Assembly: GCF_002113885.1 (NCBI RefSeq)
Contig: NW_018408657.1
Span: 245,861-308,670, forward strand
Direction: 5' to 3'
DNA: 62,810 nt
Source of the DNA: Mizuhopecten yessoensis
Taxonomy: Eukaryota
Numbering within the stretch: the stretch's first letter is position 1; each line of letters opens with the position of its first letter. Made by a program: the position numbers and the translations under genes. Positions 772-22,000 of the stretch are shown here, piece after piece. The notes under the pieces were generated by a model, which was not told the origin of the DNA, ran no database searches, and saw only the letters and a program-made list of their open reading frames with translations.

Positions 772-1008
772 ATGTTTATTAAATTTAGGATTTCTAAAAT
801 AGTTCAAATAATCTCCCTTGCTGTAAGCCTCCTTCTGAATGAGGTCCTGTCTGGAACAGTGATAAATTTACCCTTAAAGGGGGTCTCATCTCGTGTACAT
901 TACCAGCGGACCAGGCGTAGCGTCCCATACGACCAAAAGGGTAACCTTGAAGGGAAGCCAGGACAGGGCTATTACATGGAGGTTCTCATGGGCAGTCCAC
1001 CACAACAG
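772..1008 (+). CDS. BACE1: BACE coding exon 1 (signal peptide, prodomain, ...[16 protein letters not shown])
   Basis: ATG at 772. An upstream acceptor tttttcag ends at 692, so the exon probably starts at 693 with UTR. Donor cag|gtacat at 1008/1009. Confidence 0.9.
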
Positions 1009-4000
1009 GTACATACTATTACAGTATCAGTCCCCACAACAGGTACATACTATTACAGTATCAGTCCCCCACAACAGGTACATATACTATTAAAGTATCA
1101 GTCCCCCACAACCGGTACATACTATTACATTATCAGTCACCCACAACAGGTACATATACTATTACAGTATCAGTCCCCCACAACCGGTACATACTATTAC
1201 ATTATCAGTCCCCCACAACAGGTACATATACTATTACAGTATCAGTCCCCCACAACAGGTACATACTATTACATTACCAGTCCCCCACAACAGGTACATA
1301 CTATTACATTATCAGGCCCCCACAACAGGTACATACTATTACAGTATCAGTCCTCCACAACAGGTACATACTATTACAGTATCAGTCCCCACAACAGGTA
1401 CATCCTATTACAGTATCAGTCCCCCACAACAGGTACATCCTATTACAGTATCAGTCCCCCACAACAGGTACATACTATTACATTATCAGCATAATTTTGG
1501 ATGATTATTTTATATATATAATACTTGTTAAAATCAAGAGATTATATATCAACATATAAATGTACATGTATAAGCCTTTCATTGATCAGTTTTGTTTATA
1601 GTTAAACCTGAGTGTTTTTGTAGGATTTTTTTCAGGTAATTCCTGAACATCTTTTAACAGTTGATGATGAATATAAATCCCATTTCCAGTTCTAAAAGTT
1701 CTTAAAATGTGGGCAAGTTCCACTGGAAAACCTGCATGAGTACATAATTAGCTCACCTGGTCCAAAGGACCATGGTGAGCTTATGCCATACCGCAGCATC
1801 CGCCGTCCGTCAACTTTTACTTCAAAACACTACTAGTCATGAACGATTTAGCAGATTTTGACCAAATTTGGTCAGAAGCATCCTTGAGGGAAAGGGAACA
1901 TTTTTTTTTATAAATGTTGGGTCTGGGCCCCCTTGGGGCTAAGGGGCAGGGCCCACTAGGGGGAAAATAGCAAATTCTTTAAAATCCTTCTTCTTCTGTA
2001 GGAATAAAAGAATTTTGTCCAAATTTGGTATGAAGCATCCACGGGCGAAGGGGAACCAATTTTGTATAAAAGGTGTGTCTAACCCCCCTGGAGGCAGAGA
2101 GGCAGGGCCCAATAGGGGAAATAGAGGTAAAACGTTTAAAATCCTTTTCTACTATAGGGATTAAGGGATTTTATCCTAATTTAGTCTTGAGCTCCTTTGG
2201 CCAAGGGGACTCAATTTTGTATAAACAGTGAGTGTGGCCCCCCTGGGGGCAGAAGGGCGGGACCCAATAGGGAAACAGCAAATTCTTCTAATACATTCTT
2301 CTGTACAAATTACAGGATTTTGTCCAAATTTGGTATGAAGCATCCTTGGGTGAAGGGGAACCAATTTTGTATAAAAGGTGTGTCTAACCTCCCTGGAGGC
2401 AGAGAGGCCGTGCCCAATAGGGGAAATAGAGGTAAAACCTTTACAATCCTTCTTCTTCCATAGGGATTAAGGGATTTTATCCTAATTTAGTCTTGAGCAT
2501 CCTTGGACCAAGGGGACTCAATTTTGTATAAGCAGTGGGTGTGGTCTCTCAGGGGTCAGAATGGGGGGGGGCCAATAGGAGAAATAGAGGTAAAACCTTT
2601 AAAATCCTTCTTCGACCATCAGGATAAAGGGATTTTATCCATATTTAGTCTGGAGCATCCTTCGGCCAAGGGGACTCAATTTTGTATAAACAATGGGTGT
2701 GACCTACCTATGGGGCATAGGGGTGGGGCTCTGTTATATCTCAAGTACTGGATGGATCTTTCTGAAATACAGCACCTAACAAGGAGTGCTATATCTTTAC
2801 TTCATACCAATTATTTTAAACATCTTCAGGTGAGCGATACAGGCCCTCTGGGGCTCTTGTTTTAATTATGATCTCAGCTAGTTCCAAGTATAACTGAAAT
2901 ATATAAATATAAACCTATCAATTATAGTCAAAGTGAATATAAACAAGAAATTGTACATGGTTAAATAAAGGTTAATGTTACCATTAATGTAACGAGGGTT
3001 ATTTTTTTTCAAGAAGTAAAATGTAACCGATTAAATACAGTGGCAACTTGTTGATCAATGCAGATGACTACTGTCTCGTCAGTCAGAGGAGACTTGTCTA
3101 TCTTGTTTCTACACACTGTTATCTCAGATCTAATCCAGATATCTGACATTAGTGCCACTTTTGCTATACAGTATACATCTTTAATTTATGAAGAACGATT
3201 CCTGATGTTTGTTTTTGTCAGCTGAATGTGTTGATTGACACTGGCAGTAGTAACTTTGCTGTGGCCGCCAGTCCAAACCCTGACATCACTGCCTGGTTCC
3301 ACATAAATGAGTAAGTTGTGGTGGTATTACATGTTTATTACTGGTAATTGCTAACTAAATATGTGTAGTTTGCTGTTCAATGCTTATATATCAATTTAAA
3401 GAGTGATAAAGACTTTCACAATAAACATAATAATTAAGTCATTTAGAGGTCTAGCTTTTATTCTTAAAATTTAAAAACTGTTTTCCTTGTGAGCTTGTAA
3501 GTGTTTCTTGTGGTTTTATGTATATAGGGTTTATAGTGCCCGTTTAACAGCTAACACCTCCATGTGTGTGATGCTTGTCGTTTGATGGATGTGGTATGGT
3601 GCAGTAAGCCTATTTGCCTCCTTGCAATAGTGCAGATCTGATACCAATCTTAAGTGTCCTACCTCACTGAAATATCCTACTAAAATGTAGCTGTTGACCT
3701 TACTGCTGAACGTTTAGCAGGCAATAACAGCTACCATTGTCAAGGTCTTTAGTATGCTGAACGTTTAGCAGGCAATAACAGCTACCAGTGTTAAGGTCTT
3801 TAGTATGCTGAACATTTAGCAGGCAATAGCAGCTACCATTGGTAAGGTCTTTAGCATGCTGAACGTTTAGCAGGCAATAACAGCTACCATTTTTAAGGTC
3901 TTTAGTATGCTGAACATTTAGCAGGCAATAACAGCTACCATTGGTAAGGTCTTTAGTATGCTGAACGGTTAGCAGGCAATAACAGCTACCAGTTTTAAGG

Positions 4001-19000: not shown

Positions 19001-22000
19001 CTAGGCCCTAATTAAAACATAACTGTGTATGTTTGTTTACAGTATAATATTGGTAGGACGGTCATTGACAGTGAGACTATTAATCAGTCTAGGCCCTAAT
19101 TAAAACATAACTGTGTATGTTTGTTTACAGTATAATATTGGTAGGACGGTCATTGACAGTGAGACTATTAATCAGTCTAGGCCCTAATTAAAACATAACT
19201 GTGTATGTTTGTTTACAGTATAATATTGGTAGGACGGTCATTGACAGTGAGACTATTAATCAGTCTAGGCCCTAATTAAAACATAACTGTGTATGTTTGT
19301 TTACAGTATAATATTGGTAGGACGGTCATTGACAGTGAGACTATTAATCAGTCTAGGCCCTAATTAAAACATAACTGTGTATGTTTGTTTACAGTATAAT
19401 ATTGGTAGGACGGTCATTGACAGTGAGACTATTAATCAGTCTAGGCCCTAATTAAAACATAACTGTGTATGTTTGTTTACAGTATAATTTTGGTAAGACA
19501 ATCGTAGACAGTGGAACAACTAATCTACGCCTCCCCATCAAAGTGTTCAAAACACTGGTCACAAAAGTTAAACAACATTTACAGGTGAGTCTTGTTCATG
19601 CTGATTGTTATATTTGATAATAATAGAGATTGTGTAACCAATATTTGTATTAATAAAACAATGGTAAGATCATACCATCCTGAACTAGTACAGGGCTATA
19701 CTCAACTCCTATAACATTTCTCACTTGCCTATAATTATATATAGCTACATGGGTTTTCTCTAGATACTCTGATTTCCTCCAAAATTAGGACCCCAAGCTT
19801 TTTCCATCCTCATTCCTGGCCAATGAGAGTGGTTTTGAACTGGTTTCATGAGTGTTGTTAAATAAATAATGTTTAATTGAAAATCTTACTGAGAATGACG
19901 AGATCATTTTGAAGTAGGTTAAGTGACTTACTTGACGTAGTTCCTTCTCTCCAATTGGAGAATAGGCCCATAAACAAGTCCTCTCCACAACACCCTACCT
20001 TCTGCCTTCTGTTCAGCGTCTGACCATGATGAGAAGCCTAGGTGTTTCATTTCTTTCTCTACTGTCCTACTCCAGGTTTCTTTTGGTCTTCCTTGTTTCC
20101 TTTTCCCTTCTGGTGTCCAACCAAGTGCTACACGTGCATGGCAGTTGGGCTCCATTCTCAACACATGCCCTATCCATCGCCATCTTCTTGTTTTTATGAT
20201 GCCACTGATTCTGTCAGTAACTTTTTCTGGCCAGACTATTCTTAGTACCTGTCTGAGACATTTATGTAGGAAGGTGTCTAGAATTTTCTCGTTGCCTTTG
20301 GTCATTTTCCATGTTTCTGCTCCATATAAAAGCACAGATAATACATTTGAATGGTAAATATTTTACTTGGTCTTCCTGTTGATTTGATTGCTTGCCAAGA
20401 TTTTTGTAAGCTAATGAAAGGCTTATCTTGCTAGTCCTAGCCTTCTTATATCTTCATCTGCACCGCCTGTTGTATTAATGGTTGCTCCAAGATATACAAA
20501 CGTGTTAACATCTTCAATACGTGTCCCATGTATTCTGACTGGCCGGGTGTTGTTGGCAAGTTTTGTCTTGGCGGTGTTGACATTCAAGCCCTTTGTTTTT
20601 GAGTAGTTGTTTAGCAAGCTGGTCTTCTGCTGAATCTGTTCTCTGTTGCTGGATAGTAGTGCTATGTCATCCACATAGTTTAGTTCTTCTAGTTTAGTTC
20701 TTGGGTTCCATCGGATGCCAGCTGTGTTGTTGCTATTAGTTGTTGCTCTCATTATCCAGTCGATAACTAGTAGGAACAAGAATCCTGACATGTTACAGCC
20801 CTGCTTTACTCCCGACTTCAGTAGGTTAATTAGGCCACTGGAAACTTTGATATAGCTTTAATTCATTATAATGGTCAATAGTCATGGGAAATATCCTTGT
20901 CAGTTATATAGGTACTACATTGTGTTTGTCTATTTAACCATAACATGTCTAACCTTTTAATGTATGATCTTTATGTAATGAGTTTTAAAATTGAAAATTC
21001 GGCATTTCAAACAACCAAATTTTGAAGAAGAAAAATTGCATCTGAAATCAATTAATTATGTTCTGGTTGTATAAGTTAGAAAGCTATAATATTAACACAT
21101 TGTTCTAATTGTAAACTGCTTTGTCCTGTAAAGTGTTCTCAATAAGAGTATCCTAGTTGGTTGTACAGACTTTTCATTGTCTTCTGTCAGATGTCCGGGA
21201 CACTGCCGAGAGAAAACTTCTGGGAAGGCGTCGACCATATTTGTTGGGAAGAGGGTAAAATTCCATACAACGACTTTCCAACCATAACAATTTCATTTCC
21301 CCGAACCAAAAACTCCTCTTTTGATCTCGTTGTTTCTCCACAGGTAAGTCTCTAACATCAAATACAACAGCTGCTATATATTAATTGAACACAAAATCAA
21401 ATTTTCAGGTATTATACATAAACAAATACTTTATGTCTCATAGGGTTCTTAATCTATTACTTAGGCTGCTAGGCTAGTGGATGTGATCTATTGATCTGGA
21501 CACAGGCTGCTAGGCTAGTGGATGGGATCTATTGATCTGGACACAGACTGCTTGCTATGCTAGTGGATGTGATCTATTGATCTGGACGCAGACTGCTTGC
21601 TAGGCTAGTGGATGTGATCTATTGATCTGGACACAGACTGCTAGGCTAGTGGGTGTGATCTATTGATCTGGACACAGGCTGCTAGGCTAGTGGATGTGGA
21701 CAGCTCTATTGATCTGGGCACATGCTGCTAGGCTAGTGAATGTGATCTATTGATCTGGTCACATGCTGCTAGGCTAGTGGAGGTGATCTATTGATCTGGA
21801 CAAAGGCTGCTAGGCTAGTGGATGTGGAAAGCTCTATTGATCTGGACACATGCTGCTAGGATAGTGGATGTGATCTATTGACCTGGACACAGGCTGCTAG
21901 GCTAGAGGATGTGAAGAGATCTATTGATCTGGACACAGGCTTCTAGGCTAGTGGATGTGATCTTTTGATCTGGACACAGACTGGTTGCTAGGCTAGTGGA

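Follow-up and report, generated by a model that had tools for sequence, protein, structure and literature searches.

The beta-secretase-like (BACE-like) gene of the Yesso scallop, Mizuhopecten yessoensis, contains four tandem arrays that each start or end on a splice junction of the gene itself. Most probably these are mirage-type minisatellites, produced by local tandem duplication of the junction and expansion into the intron. The process acts across scallops (Pectinidae); it turns over quickly, and the junctions affected vary with the species.

The window, that is, the whole 62.8-kb stretch of M. yessoensis DNA analyzed, harbors a BACE-like gene of 10 coding exons and hence 18 junctions (Table 1). 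In an exon-by-exon check, all 10 exon translations were found, each contiguous, in the public M. yessoensis protein P0285, so the coding sequence is intact, and the exon-proximal splice sites are those used by this annotated protein model. The Pecten and Ylistrum proteins can be aligned from residue 1 of exon 1. The nine BACE intron positions are common to M. yessoensis, Pecten, and Ylistrum (9/9), and the exon blocks of the oyster, pearl oyster, and mussel orthologues agree with the scallop ones as far as they were mapped. The gene is 25.7 kb long in M. yessoensis, compared with 10.7 and 9.2 kb for the gene of two further scallop species.

Table 1. Exons, arrays, and retrotransposon of the BACE-like gene, with positions in the window.
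Feature	Position	Strand	Remarks
Exon 1 (coding)	772..1008	+	ATG at 772, donor GT at 1009; exon tail = P0285 residues 1-11
35-bp minisatellite, x14.1	993..1489	+	Unit 1 = last 16 nt of exon 1, donor, and 19 nt of intron
Exon 2	3222..3310	+	P0285 match
51-bp minisatellite, x33	3704..5388	+	Mid intron 2; ~400 bp from either exon, off junction
Exon 3	5793..6009	+	Pfam Asp, P0285 match
18-bp minisatellite, x18.8	6005..6338	+	Unit 1 = last 5 nt of exon 3 and 13 nt of intron
Exon 4	6583..6720	+	P0285 match
65-bp array, anchor unit	6691..6751	+	Exon 4 end, real donor, and ~30 nt of intron; reference copy of repeat family D3
LTR retrotransposon	6752..12352	+	5.6 kb; between anchor unit and rest of 65-bp array
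65-bp minisatellite, body	12353..14277	+	~30 copies by TRF; ~26 in register by repeat search
36-bp minisatellite, x15	14490..15030	+	Intron 4; end 62 nt before exon 5, off junction
Exon 5	15093..15227	+	P0285 match
88-bp minisatellite, x35.5	16386..19513	+	Units 99% alike
Exon 6	19483..19584	+	P0285 match
Exon 7	21191..21343	+	P0285 match
41-bp minisatellite	21463..22295	+	Intron 7; start 120 nt past exon 7 donor, off junction
Exon 8	22825..22909	+	P0285 match
Exon 9	23499..23645	+	P0285 match
Exon 10 (incl. stop codon)	26278..26483	+	P0285 match

Arrays were called with TRF, and their terminal units were determined by direct reading and alignment. The results bear out the observation of an earlier note on this DNA that four BACE arrays, at 4 of the 18 junctions, have a splice junction as their terminal unit. 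The four are head-to-tail arrays with units of minisatellite size by TRF, and the terminal unit carries a genuine exon edge and splice site, in the case of exon 4 only if a retrotransposon insertion is discounted. The earlier note was also correct that each unit comprises exon edge, splice site, and intron edge and that expansion is intronic; the coding sequence is unchanged, the ten exons being contiguous in P0285. Copy numbers may be inexact, the assembly being split into 82,659 contigs.

The 35-bp array contains 11 decoy donors that are identical 9-mers. The 18-bp array contains 17 decoy donors (AGGTR), 6 of them identical, which form a stop-free ladder beyond exon 3 in in-frame steps of 18 nt. 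The 65-bp unit combines ~30-37 nt of the exon 4 end with ~30 nt of intron; variant units of 122 bp occur in the body of this array, along with higher-order periodicity at 187 and 252 bp, and 17 of its decoys are identical to the exon 4 donor (19 counting TGGTAAG). On the acceptor side, the 88-bp unit joins ~34 nt of intron end, acceptor included, to a diverged copy of ~52 nt of the exon 6 start. Relative to the real exon 6 start, about one quarter of positions are changed in these units, and each unit gives a weak tblastn match; the last one crosses the acceptor into real exon 6 (first ~50 nt). The 34 decoy acceptors of the array are identical 19-mers. Real sites are thus faced by tens of same-strand decoys (11, 17, 17-19, and 34), as had been proposed.

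The assignment of the exon 4 array to its donor holds for the anchor unit, which spans the donor, but the other copies have been split off by an LTR retrotransposon. This element harbors a gag-like ORF (7046-7708) and a pol ORF (7712-11371; 1220 aa), with protease, RVT_1, RNase H, and integrase zinc domains, and has a 5' LTR of ~150 bp and a 3' LTR of ~82 bp. Because it lies inside the 65-bp array, the array predates the insertion. The array body is now detached from the exon 4 donor, and only the anchor unit adjoins it.

In each case, a short DNA stretch across a splice junction was probably duplicated in tandem in situ, after which unequal exchange or replication slippage would have multiplied the copies on the intron side. 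The higher-order periods of 72, 187, and 252 bp (TRF), with spacings in register, argue for expansion by unequal exchange. Selection would preserve the exon-proximal copy as the real site, the first for a donor and the last for an acceptor, while the remaining copies, judging from the annotated protein, are probably silent, functionless decoys and presumably neutral. In donor arrays the most upstream donor would be used first, and in acceptor arrays only the last acceptor would lead into a complete exon that is followed by a strong donor. Insertion isoforms are possible because the 18-nt ladder of exon 3 is in-frame and stop-free and a unit in Ylistrum measures 33 nt, a multiple of 3; none with decoy-derived insertions was found among the cluster representatives of P0285 homologues. 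Two mechanisms suggested in the earlier note find no support. Repair templated by splicing intermediates is argued against by unit breakpoints, which never fall at the splice site and leave 4 to ~50 nt of exon in each unit. Splicing-linked R-loops are not supported by GC skew, which is negative in 5 of 9 seeded units, so that the sense strand is not consistently G-rich.

Comparison of orthologous BACE introns, which the earlier note had envisaged, revealed that junction arrays recur in Pecten maximus and Ylistrum balloti, at different junctions. Both orthologues were picked without regard to arrays. Pecten harbors an E3 donor array (19 bp, x16.6) and an E4 acceptor array (31 bp, x16), and Ylistrum an E5 acceptor array (69 bp, x3.4) and an E9 donor array (33 bp, x16.6) with perfect consensus donors. 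A further exon donor array (49 bp, x6.9) is found in Ylistrum nicastrin, near BACE, in an unselected flank. The BACE arrays are wholly different among the three scallop species. No junction-seeded arrays were found in the BACE orthologues of oyster, pearl oyster, mussel, and amphioxus.

As control loci, we investigated kinase exons at 30 loci of M. yessoensis, for whose genome 135 kinase-domain matches were listed, and SC5D of the same species; none of ~20 kinase junctions and none of 8 SC5D junctions is seeded. The SC5D arrays of M. yessoensis and Ylistrum start 55-190 nt past donors and do not include the junction. In a tblastx comparison of the window with the Ylistrum SC5D neighborhood, no further common exons were found. 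At kinase locus L019, an N adjoining the exon marks the end of a 160-bp array.

The excess at junctions was evaluated against a null model in which duplications arise uniformly along the array-collapsed gene, with introns at their pre-expansion length; this model predicts that ~10% of arrays span a junction. In M. yessoensis BACE, 4 of 7 intronic minisatellites lie on junctions, compared with 0.56 expected (P=0.001), a count that is post hoc given that the window was chosen for its junction-array pattern. In Pecten and Ylistrum BACE together, 4 of 9 arrays do so, compared with 0.97 expected (P=0.010), and the three scallop species combined show an excess at P=3.6e-5. The excess is real: junction-seeded arrays are ~5-fold more frequent than under random placement, and this recurs in the unselected orthologues. 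The unselected sample as a whole is small, with 5 seeded among ~15 arrays and 5 seeded among ~69 junctions.

The earlier note had offered a junction hotspot and survivor bias as alternatives. According to the latter there is no hotspot: minisatellites are born at random at a very high rate, those that span a junction survive by regenerating the site, and the gene stands out through selection among windows. Array density is indeed very high (~20 arrays in the 62.8-kb window), the choice of the window was post hoc, the kinase and SC5D junctions are unseeded, and if a few junctions in every hundred were seeded, a genome would be expected to contain some genes with 4 seeded out of 18. However, uniform birth gives only the ~10% stated above even with collapsed introns, and the unselected Pecten and Ylistrum genes, together with the nicastrin case, exceed it. 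Survivor bias by itself, with birth uniform, is therefore insufficient, because the ~5-fold excess repeats in unselected orthologues, and we regard the absence of any hotspot as unlikely. The excess suggests that exon edges are favored in the birth or early expansion of arrays, and whether its cause is mutational we rate as an even question. Because the kinase and SC5D loci show 0 of ~28 seeded junctions, either the seeding rate is uneven or BACE is unusually prone; BACE sits at the high end of junction seeding, and outlier status cannot be claimed for it.

It is also conceivable, though improbable, that the arrays are maintained by selection, with decoys that aid the real site by recruiting U1 or U2AF, that favor retention of the intron or regulation coupled to NMD, or that give in-frame insertion isoforms. 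The in-frame, stop-free ladder past exon 3 and the 33-nt Ylistrum E9 unit with its perfect consensus donors would suit such a role, and a precedent exists in human IFI6 and CBS, which use the first decoys (PMC1557585). Against it, the seeded junctions differ per species and arrays are missing from the same junctions in sister species, a pattern of turnover rather than conservation. In addition, the 35-, 65-, and 88-bp units would lead to a frame shift or stops, and the exon 4 array has been tolerated 5.6 kb from its donor, behind a retrotransposon.

Less probable still is that the arrays, or the 18-bp one at least, are members of a minisatellite family dispersed by ectopic exchange, which landed at donors because these share its CAGGTA core. 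Arrays resembling the 18-bp one exist at >=25 other loci (70-83% identity), so a partly non-local origin is possible for this unit, and ACAGGTA occurs in sense orientation in several non-junction arrays as well (the Pecten 38-bp and L013 20-bp arrays). However, short donor-seeded units should come to resemble the 5' splice-site consensus with AT-rich intron, and donor-like motifs (>=7/9 matches) in non-junction arrays, 8 sense and 4 antisense, show no significant bias. The 35-, 65-, and 88-bp units, moreover, are found only at the BACE locus in the 988-Mb M. yessoensis assembly, and their intron parts are similar to single-copy intron starts of Ylistrum, both of which speak for local origin. 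For these three units a transposon-borne or dispersed satellite was rejected on account of their uniqueness. An assembly artefact, in which repeat mis-assembly created the arrays or their contact with exons, is very improbable: the assembly is fragmented and a 3.1-kb array of 99% identity is hard for short-read assembly, but there are no N runs within or beside the four arrays and the same architecture is found in independent assemblies from two other scallops, one of them a 39.6-Mb chromosome-scale record.

The interpretation as local duplication and expansion of junctions has close parallels. Amphioxus Adh3 is reportedly the subject of a description of mirage minisatellites by Canestro et al. 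2002. Amphioxus "mirage" minisatellites are found in Adh3, in the globins BflGb6 and BflGb9 (Ebner et al. 2010), and at other loci (PMC3087553). They are intronic tandem duplications of the 5' or 3' exon-intron boundary with units of 10 to ~160 bp; regular splicing is undisturbed, and the repeats evolve in concert except for the edge copy (PMC3087553). The scallop BACE arrays are likewise intronic tandem copies of either boundary, so the density in one gene, which the earlier note called unusual, is not supported as unprecedented: arrays of this type had already been named. The mirage-type minisatellite is known, and what is new here is its presence in molluscs, for which no junction-seeded arrays were found in the literature searched. 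Unlike the amphioxus cases, those of scallops occur in Mollusca, reach 35 copies, and affect four junctions in one gene. Their excess has been measured and independent births in orthologues observed, neither of which we found reported in PMC3087553. The amphioxus BACE orthologue itself has no junction array.

Human junction-spanning VNTRs occur in F7 intron 7 (37 bp), IFI6/6-16 intron 2 (25 pseudo-sites), CBS intron 13, LMNB2, and PDGF, with a first monomer that spans the boundary and identical pseudo-donors after the real donor; mostly the most upstream site is used (PMC1557585). The scallop donor arrays have the same organization, but the human VNTRs are isolated cases that involve donors only, whereas in the scallop acceptors are affected too and such arrays are far more frequent per gene. 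In the Rogers model, an AG|GT proto-splice site is duplicated in tandem and an intron is thereby gained (PMC3265369, PMC2891723). There too, tandem duplication duplicates splice signals and leaves the mRNA unchanged, but the scallop arrays create no intron and their units contain old intron sequence. Intron gain by this route was rejected for BACE on the conserved intron positions in Pecten and Ylistrum and the matching mapped exon blocks in oyster, pearl oyster, and mussel.

In bivalve genomes, junction arrays can mislead both gene prediction and assembly from short reads. They are also a natural experiment on splice-site choice, with one real site and up to 34 identical copies, on donor and acceptor sides, in several genes and species. 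Should the ~5-fold excess hold genome-wide, it would reveal an exon-edge bias lacking from current models of minisatellite birth and would explain part of scallop intron expansion. We tentatively suggest, as a possibility that may well prove wrong, that in scallops, and perhaps amphioxus, a process makes or expands tandem duplications preferentially at junctions, so that splice junctions would be the favored birthplace of intronic minisatellites and a main driver of intron growth. If true, splice-site sequence, or the chromatin or transcription of exon edges, would be tied to a specific mutational mechanism.

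The window carries, on its + strand, a gene for an aspartic protease that resembles beta-secretase (BACE). Its third coding exon (E3) matches Pfam Asp, and the full-length relatives retrieved with this exon are beta-secretases of bivalve, brachiopod, and vertebrate origin. Ten coding exons were placed against P0285, a public protein titled "Beta-secretase 1 [Mizuhopecten yessoensis]", confirming the 18 coding junctions counted earlier. P0285 is identical to the window when compared exon by exon, which identifies the organism as the Yesso scallop. Each exon translation is contiguous within P0285, and GT and AG flank every intron; the model was searched and checked per exon. 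The downstream neighbour of BACE is lathosterol oxidase (SC5D), which is 86% identical to SC5D of Ylistrum balloti. This animal DNA is very rich in minisatellites: TRF, with overlapping rows merged, finds ~20 arrays in the 62.8 kb window, which belongs to an assembly of 987.6 Mb in 82,659 contigs.

An earlier note described four BACE arrays as seeded on real splice junctions, that is, as having a terminal unit that contains the real exon edge and splice site. TRF and the sequence agree that the four arrays are real and well described. In the 35-bp array the real E1 donor lies in the first unit, and the donor 9-mer recurs exactly in 11 later units. The 18-bp array supplies 17 additional AGGTR sites spaced 18 nt apart, and the reading frame is open across the entire array past E3. 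The 88-bp unit at the E6 acceptor contains a polypyrimidine tract, AG, and a diverged ~52-nt copy of the E6 start, in which ~1/4 of positions differ from real E6 and which tblastn still detects weakly; the real 19-mer spanning the acceptor is repeated in 34 units. Three more BACE minisatellites found by TRF lie off junctions.

At the E4 donor, the first unit of the 65-bp array is the real junction, as had been claimed, but the other copies are split off by a 5.6-kb LTR retrotransposon in intron 4. Its ORFs are a gag-like one and an open pol ORF of 1220 aa that encodes protease, RT, RNase H, and integrase. Because the element separates the first unit from the rest, the array predates the insertion. 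The repeated copies of this splice site (decoys) are now 5.6 kb distant from the real E4 donor. The element has CG...CG termini and LTRs of unequal length (5′ ~150 bp, 3′ ~82 bp), and its flanks share only a 3-bp ATA repeat.

Coding exons, minisatellite arrays, and LTR retrotransposon of BACE in the window
Feature	Position	Strand	Remarks
E1	772-1008	+	translation in P0285
E2	3222-3310	+	translation in P0285
E3	5793-6009	+	translation in P0285; Pfam Asp
E4	6583-6720	+	translation in P0285
E5	15093-15227	+	translation in P0285
E6	19483-19584	+	translation in P0285
E7	21191-21343	+	translation in P0285
E8	22825-22909	+	translation in P0285
E9	23499-23645	+	translation in P0285
E10	26278-26483	+	translation in P0285
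35-bp array, 14 copies	993-1489		E1 donor; starts 16 nt inside E1 end
18-bp array, 19 copies	6005-6338		E3 donor; starts 5 nt inside E3 end
65-bp array, first unit	6691-6751		on E4 donor
65-bp array, remaining copies	12353-14277		~26 in register, ~30 by TRF
88-bp array, 35.5 copies, 99% alike	16386-19513		E6 acceptor; ends inside E6
51-bp minisatellite	intron 2		off junction
36-bp minisatellite	ends 62 nt upstream of E5		off junction
41-bp minisatellite	starts 120 nt downstream of E7		off junction
LTR retrotransposon, 5.6 kb	6752-12352	+	gene's strand; between first 65-bp unit and other copies

For the null model, each array was collapsed to one unit and the LTR element was removed, leaving ~9.9 kb of intron. 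If duplications with the unit lengths seen arise uniformly along this gene, each has a probability of 0.03-0.15 of crossing one of the 18 junctions. M. yessoensis BACE has seven arrays, four of them seeded where 0.56 are expected (P=0.001). This P value is weak by itself because the window was picked for the pattern, and orthologues unselected for arrays were therefore compared. Pecten maximus BACE (gene of 10.7 kb) has a 19-bp array at the E3 donor, a 31-bp array at the E4 acceptor, and two arrays elsewhere, while Ylistrum balloti BACE (9.2 kb) has a 69-bp array at the E5 acceptor, a 33-bp array at the E9 donor (27 nt of exon plus GTAAGT), and three arrays elsewhere. These two genes together, with nine arrays, have four on junctions against 0.97 expected (P=0.010). 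Enrichment over the random expectation is found in BACE: the three scallops, with 16 arrays, have eight seeded arrays against 1.5 expected (P=3.6e-5). A further seeded array in Ylistrum (L039:24069-24414, on the flank of the SC5D locus) begins inside the end of an exon of nicastrin (positions 18-56 of Pfam Ncstrn_small) and consists of 6.9 copies of a 49-bp unit in which the last 28 nt of the exon are joined to the donor with 21 nt of intron. The seeded rate across the unselected junctions taken together is ~5/69, against which 4/18 in M. yessoensis BACE is high, though not demonstrably an outlier.

The orthologous BACE introns of Pecten and Ylistrum thus carry seeded arrays too, mostly at other junctions. 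The seeded junctions vary by species except for the E3 donor, common to M. yessoensis and Pecten, and there the intron parts of the units differ. For the most part these arrays are independent births, and their turnover is fast. No junction arrays were found in the BACE orthologues of Saccostrea (oyster), Pinctada (pearl oyster), Mytilus (mussel), and amphioxus, in which intronic minisatellites are few or absent, at ~20 splice junctions adjoining M. yessoensis kinase-domain exons, or in SC5D of M. yessoensis and Ylistrum.

SC5D intron 1 contains a G-rich minisatellite 55-95 nt past the donor of SC5D exon 1 in both scallops, with the same position and composition and differing units (window 41893-42941 in M. 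yessoensis, 30 copies of 35 bp that lack C, GC skew 1.00; L039:10308-10508 in Ylistrum, 69 bp x2.9, GC skew 0.93). At one kinase locus (L019:1-1454), an array of nine 100% identical copies of a 160-bp unit has an acceptor-like TTTGTAG as its end and borders there on a single N next to a kinase exon. At another (L014:2276-2416), two tandem copies of 72 bp are in frame within a coding exon, and tandem duplication thus reaches coding sequence too in this genome.

No second locus was found in the M. yessoensis assembly for the 35-, 65-, and 88-bp units, whose intron parts resemble the intron starts that Ylistrum has in single copy at the corresponding junctions. The 18-bp array has 70-83% matches within arrays at at least 25 other loci of this assembly (for example C5512:386732-389774, C5158:461432-463880, and C76649:64091-64853), and for that array alone a dispersed family with a CAGGTA core may lie behind it and its look-alikes. 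Convergence of short donor-seeded units on the consensus of the 5′ splice site, followed by AT-rich intron, should be expected, so the look-alikes may be many independent donor-seeded arrays.

Survivor bias under uniform birth, which the earlier note had offered, predicts through the survival of harmless duplications that ~10% of arrays lie on junctions, which is insufficient for the ~50% seen in BACE; exon edges are probably favoured in some way, either when arrays are born or when they first expand. An origin in R-loops finds no support, as GC skew varies without consistency across the seeded units, which do not generally share a G-rich, R-loop-prone sense strand; the sense-strand excess of donor motifs in non-junction arrays is not significant. 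Splicing intermediates have ends exactly at splice sites. Repair templated by them does not agree with the seeded units, which carry a variable 4 to ~50 nt of exon and 6 to ~34 nt of intron and whose breakpoints coincide with the splice site in no seeded array. These breakpoints are consistent with a DNA-level duplication straddling the junction, which would found each array. Growth through unequal exchange is indicated by higher-order periods of 72, 187, and 252 bp and variant 122-bp units in the BACE arrays.

Other repeats occur in the window. A ~157-bp dispersed repeat forms short tandem clusters at 1854-2729 (intron 1), 24166-24554 (intron 9), and an unrelated kinase locus (L028:2554-3502), and a 145-bp dispersed repeat is found at 50177-50741 and at two further loci (L021:366-1078 and L034:1-453). 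A 23-bp array (26870-27824) begins ~390 bp past the BACE stop codon and includes an inverted block (27110-27232) whose unit is the reverse complement of neighbouring units. Units of the 43-bp x39 array at 60017-61724 contain a pyrimidine run followed by CAG|GTGAGA, which is nearly a perfect donor; an exon adjoining this array could not be placed. Minus-strand ORFs at 19931-20857 (intron 6) and 35500-38182 (between BACE and SC5D) look by eye like putative non-LTR retrotransposon reverse-transcriptase and endonuclease fragments.

The name "mirages" was coined in amphioxus Adh3 for minisatellites with an end unit across a boundary of exon and intron; they recur in amphioxus globins at 5′ and 3′ boundaries with splicing undisturbed, and were considered perhaps general among cephalochordates (PMC3087553). 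Isolated human cases are known in F7, IFI6, CBS, LMNB2, and PDGF, and in F7 the most upstream of identical donors is the sole site used (PMC1557585). P0285 likewise uses the exon-proximal site at each seeded junction of scallop BACE, so that the donor arrays resemble F7 in this respect. The gene would continue to work since the exon-proximal copy stays the used site; at the E6 acceptor, the complete exon and a strong donor would come after the last copy only. Judged from sequence, the scallop arrays show each defining mirage feature tested and belong to a known kind, not to a new one. The literature searched contained nothing on mirage-type arrays in molluscs. What exceeds precedent is the measured junction excess and the recurrence at differing junctions in three scallop species.
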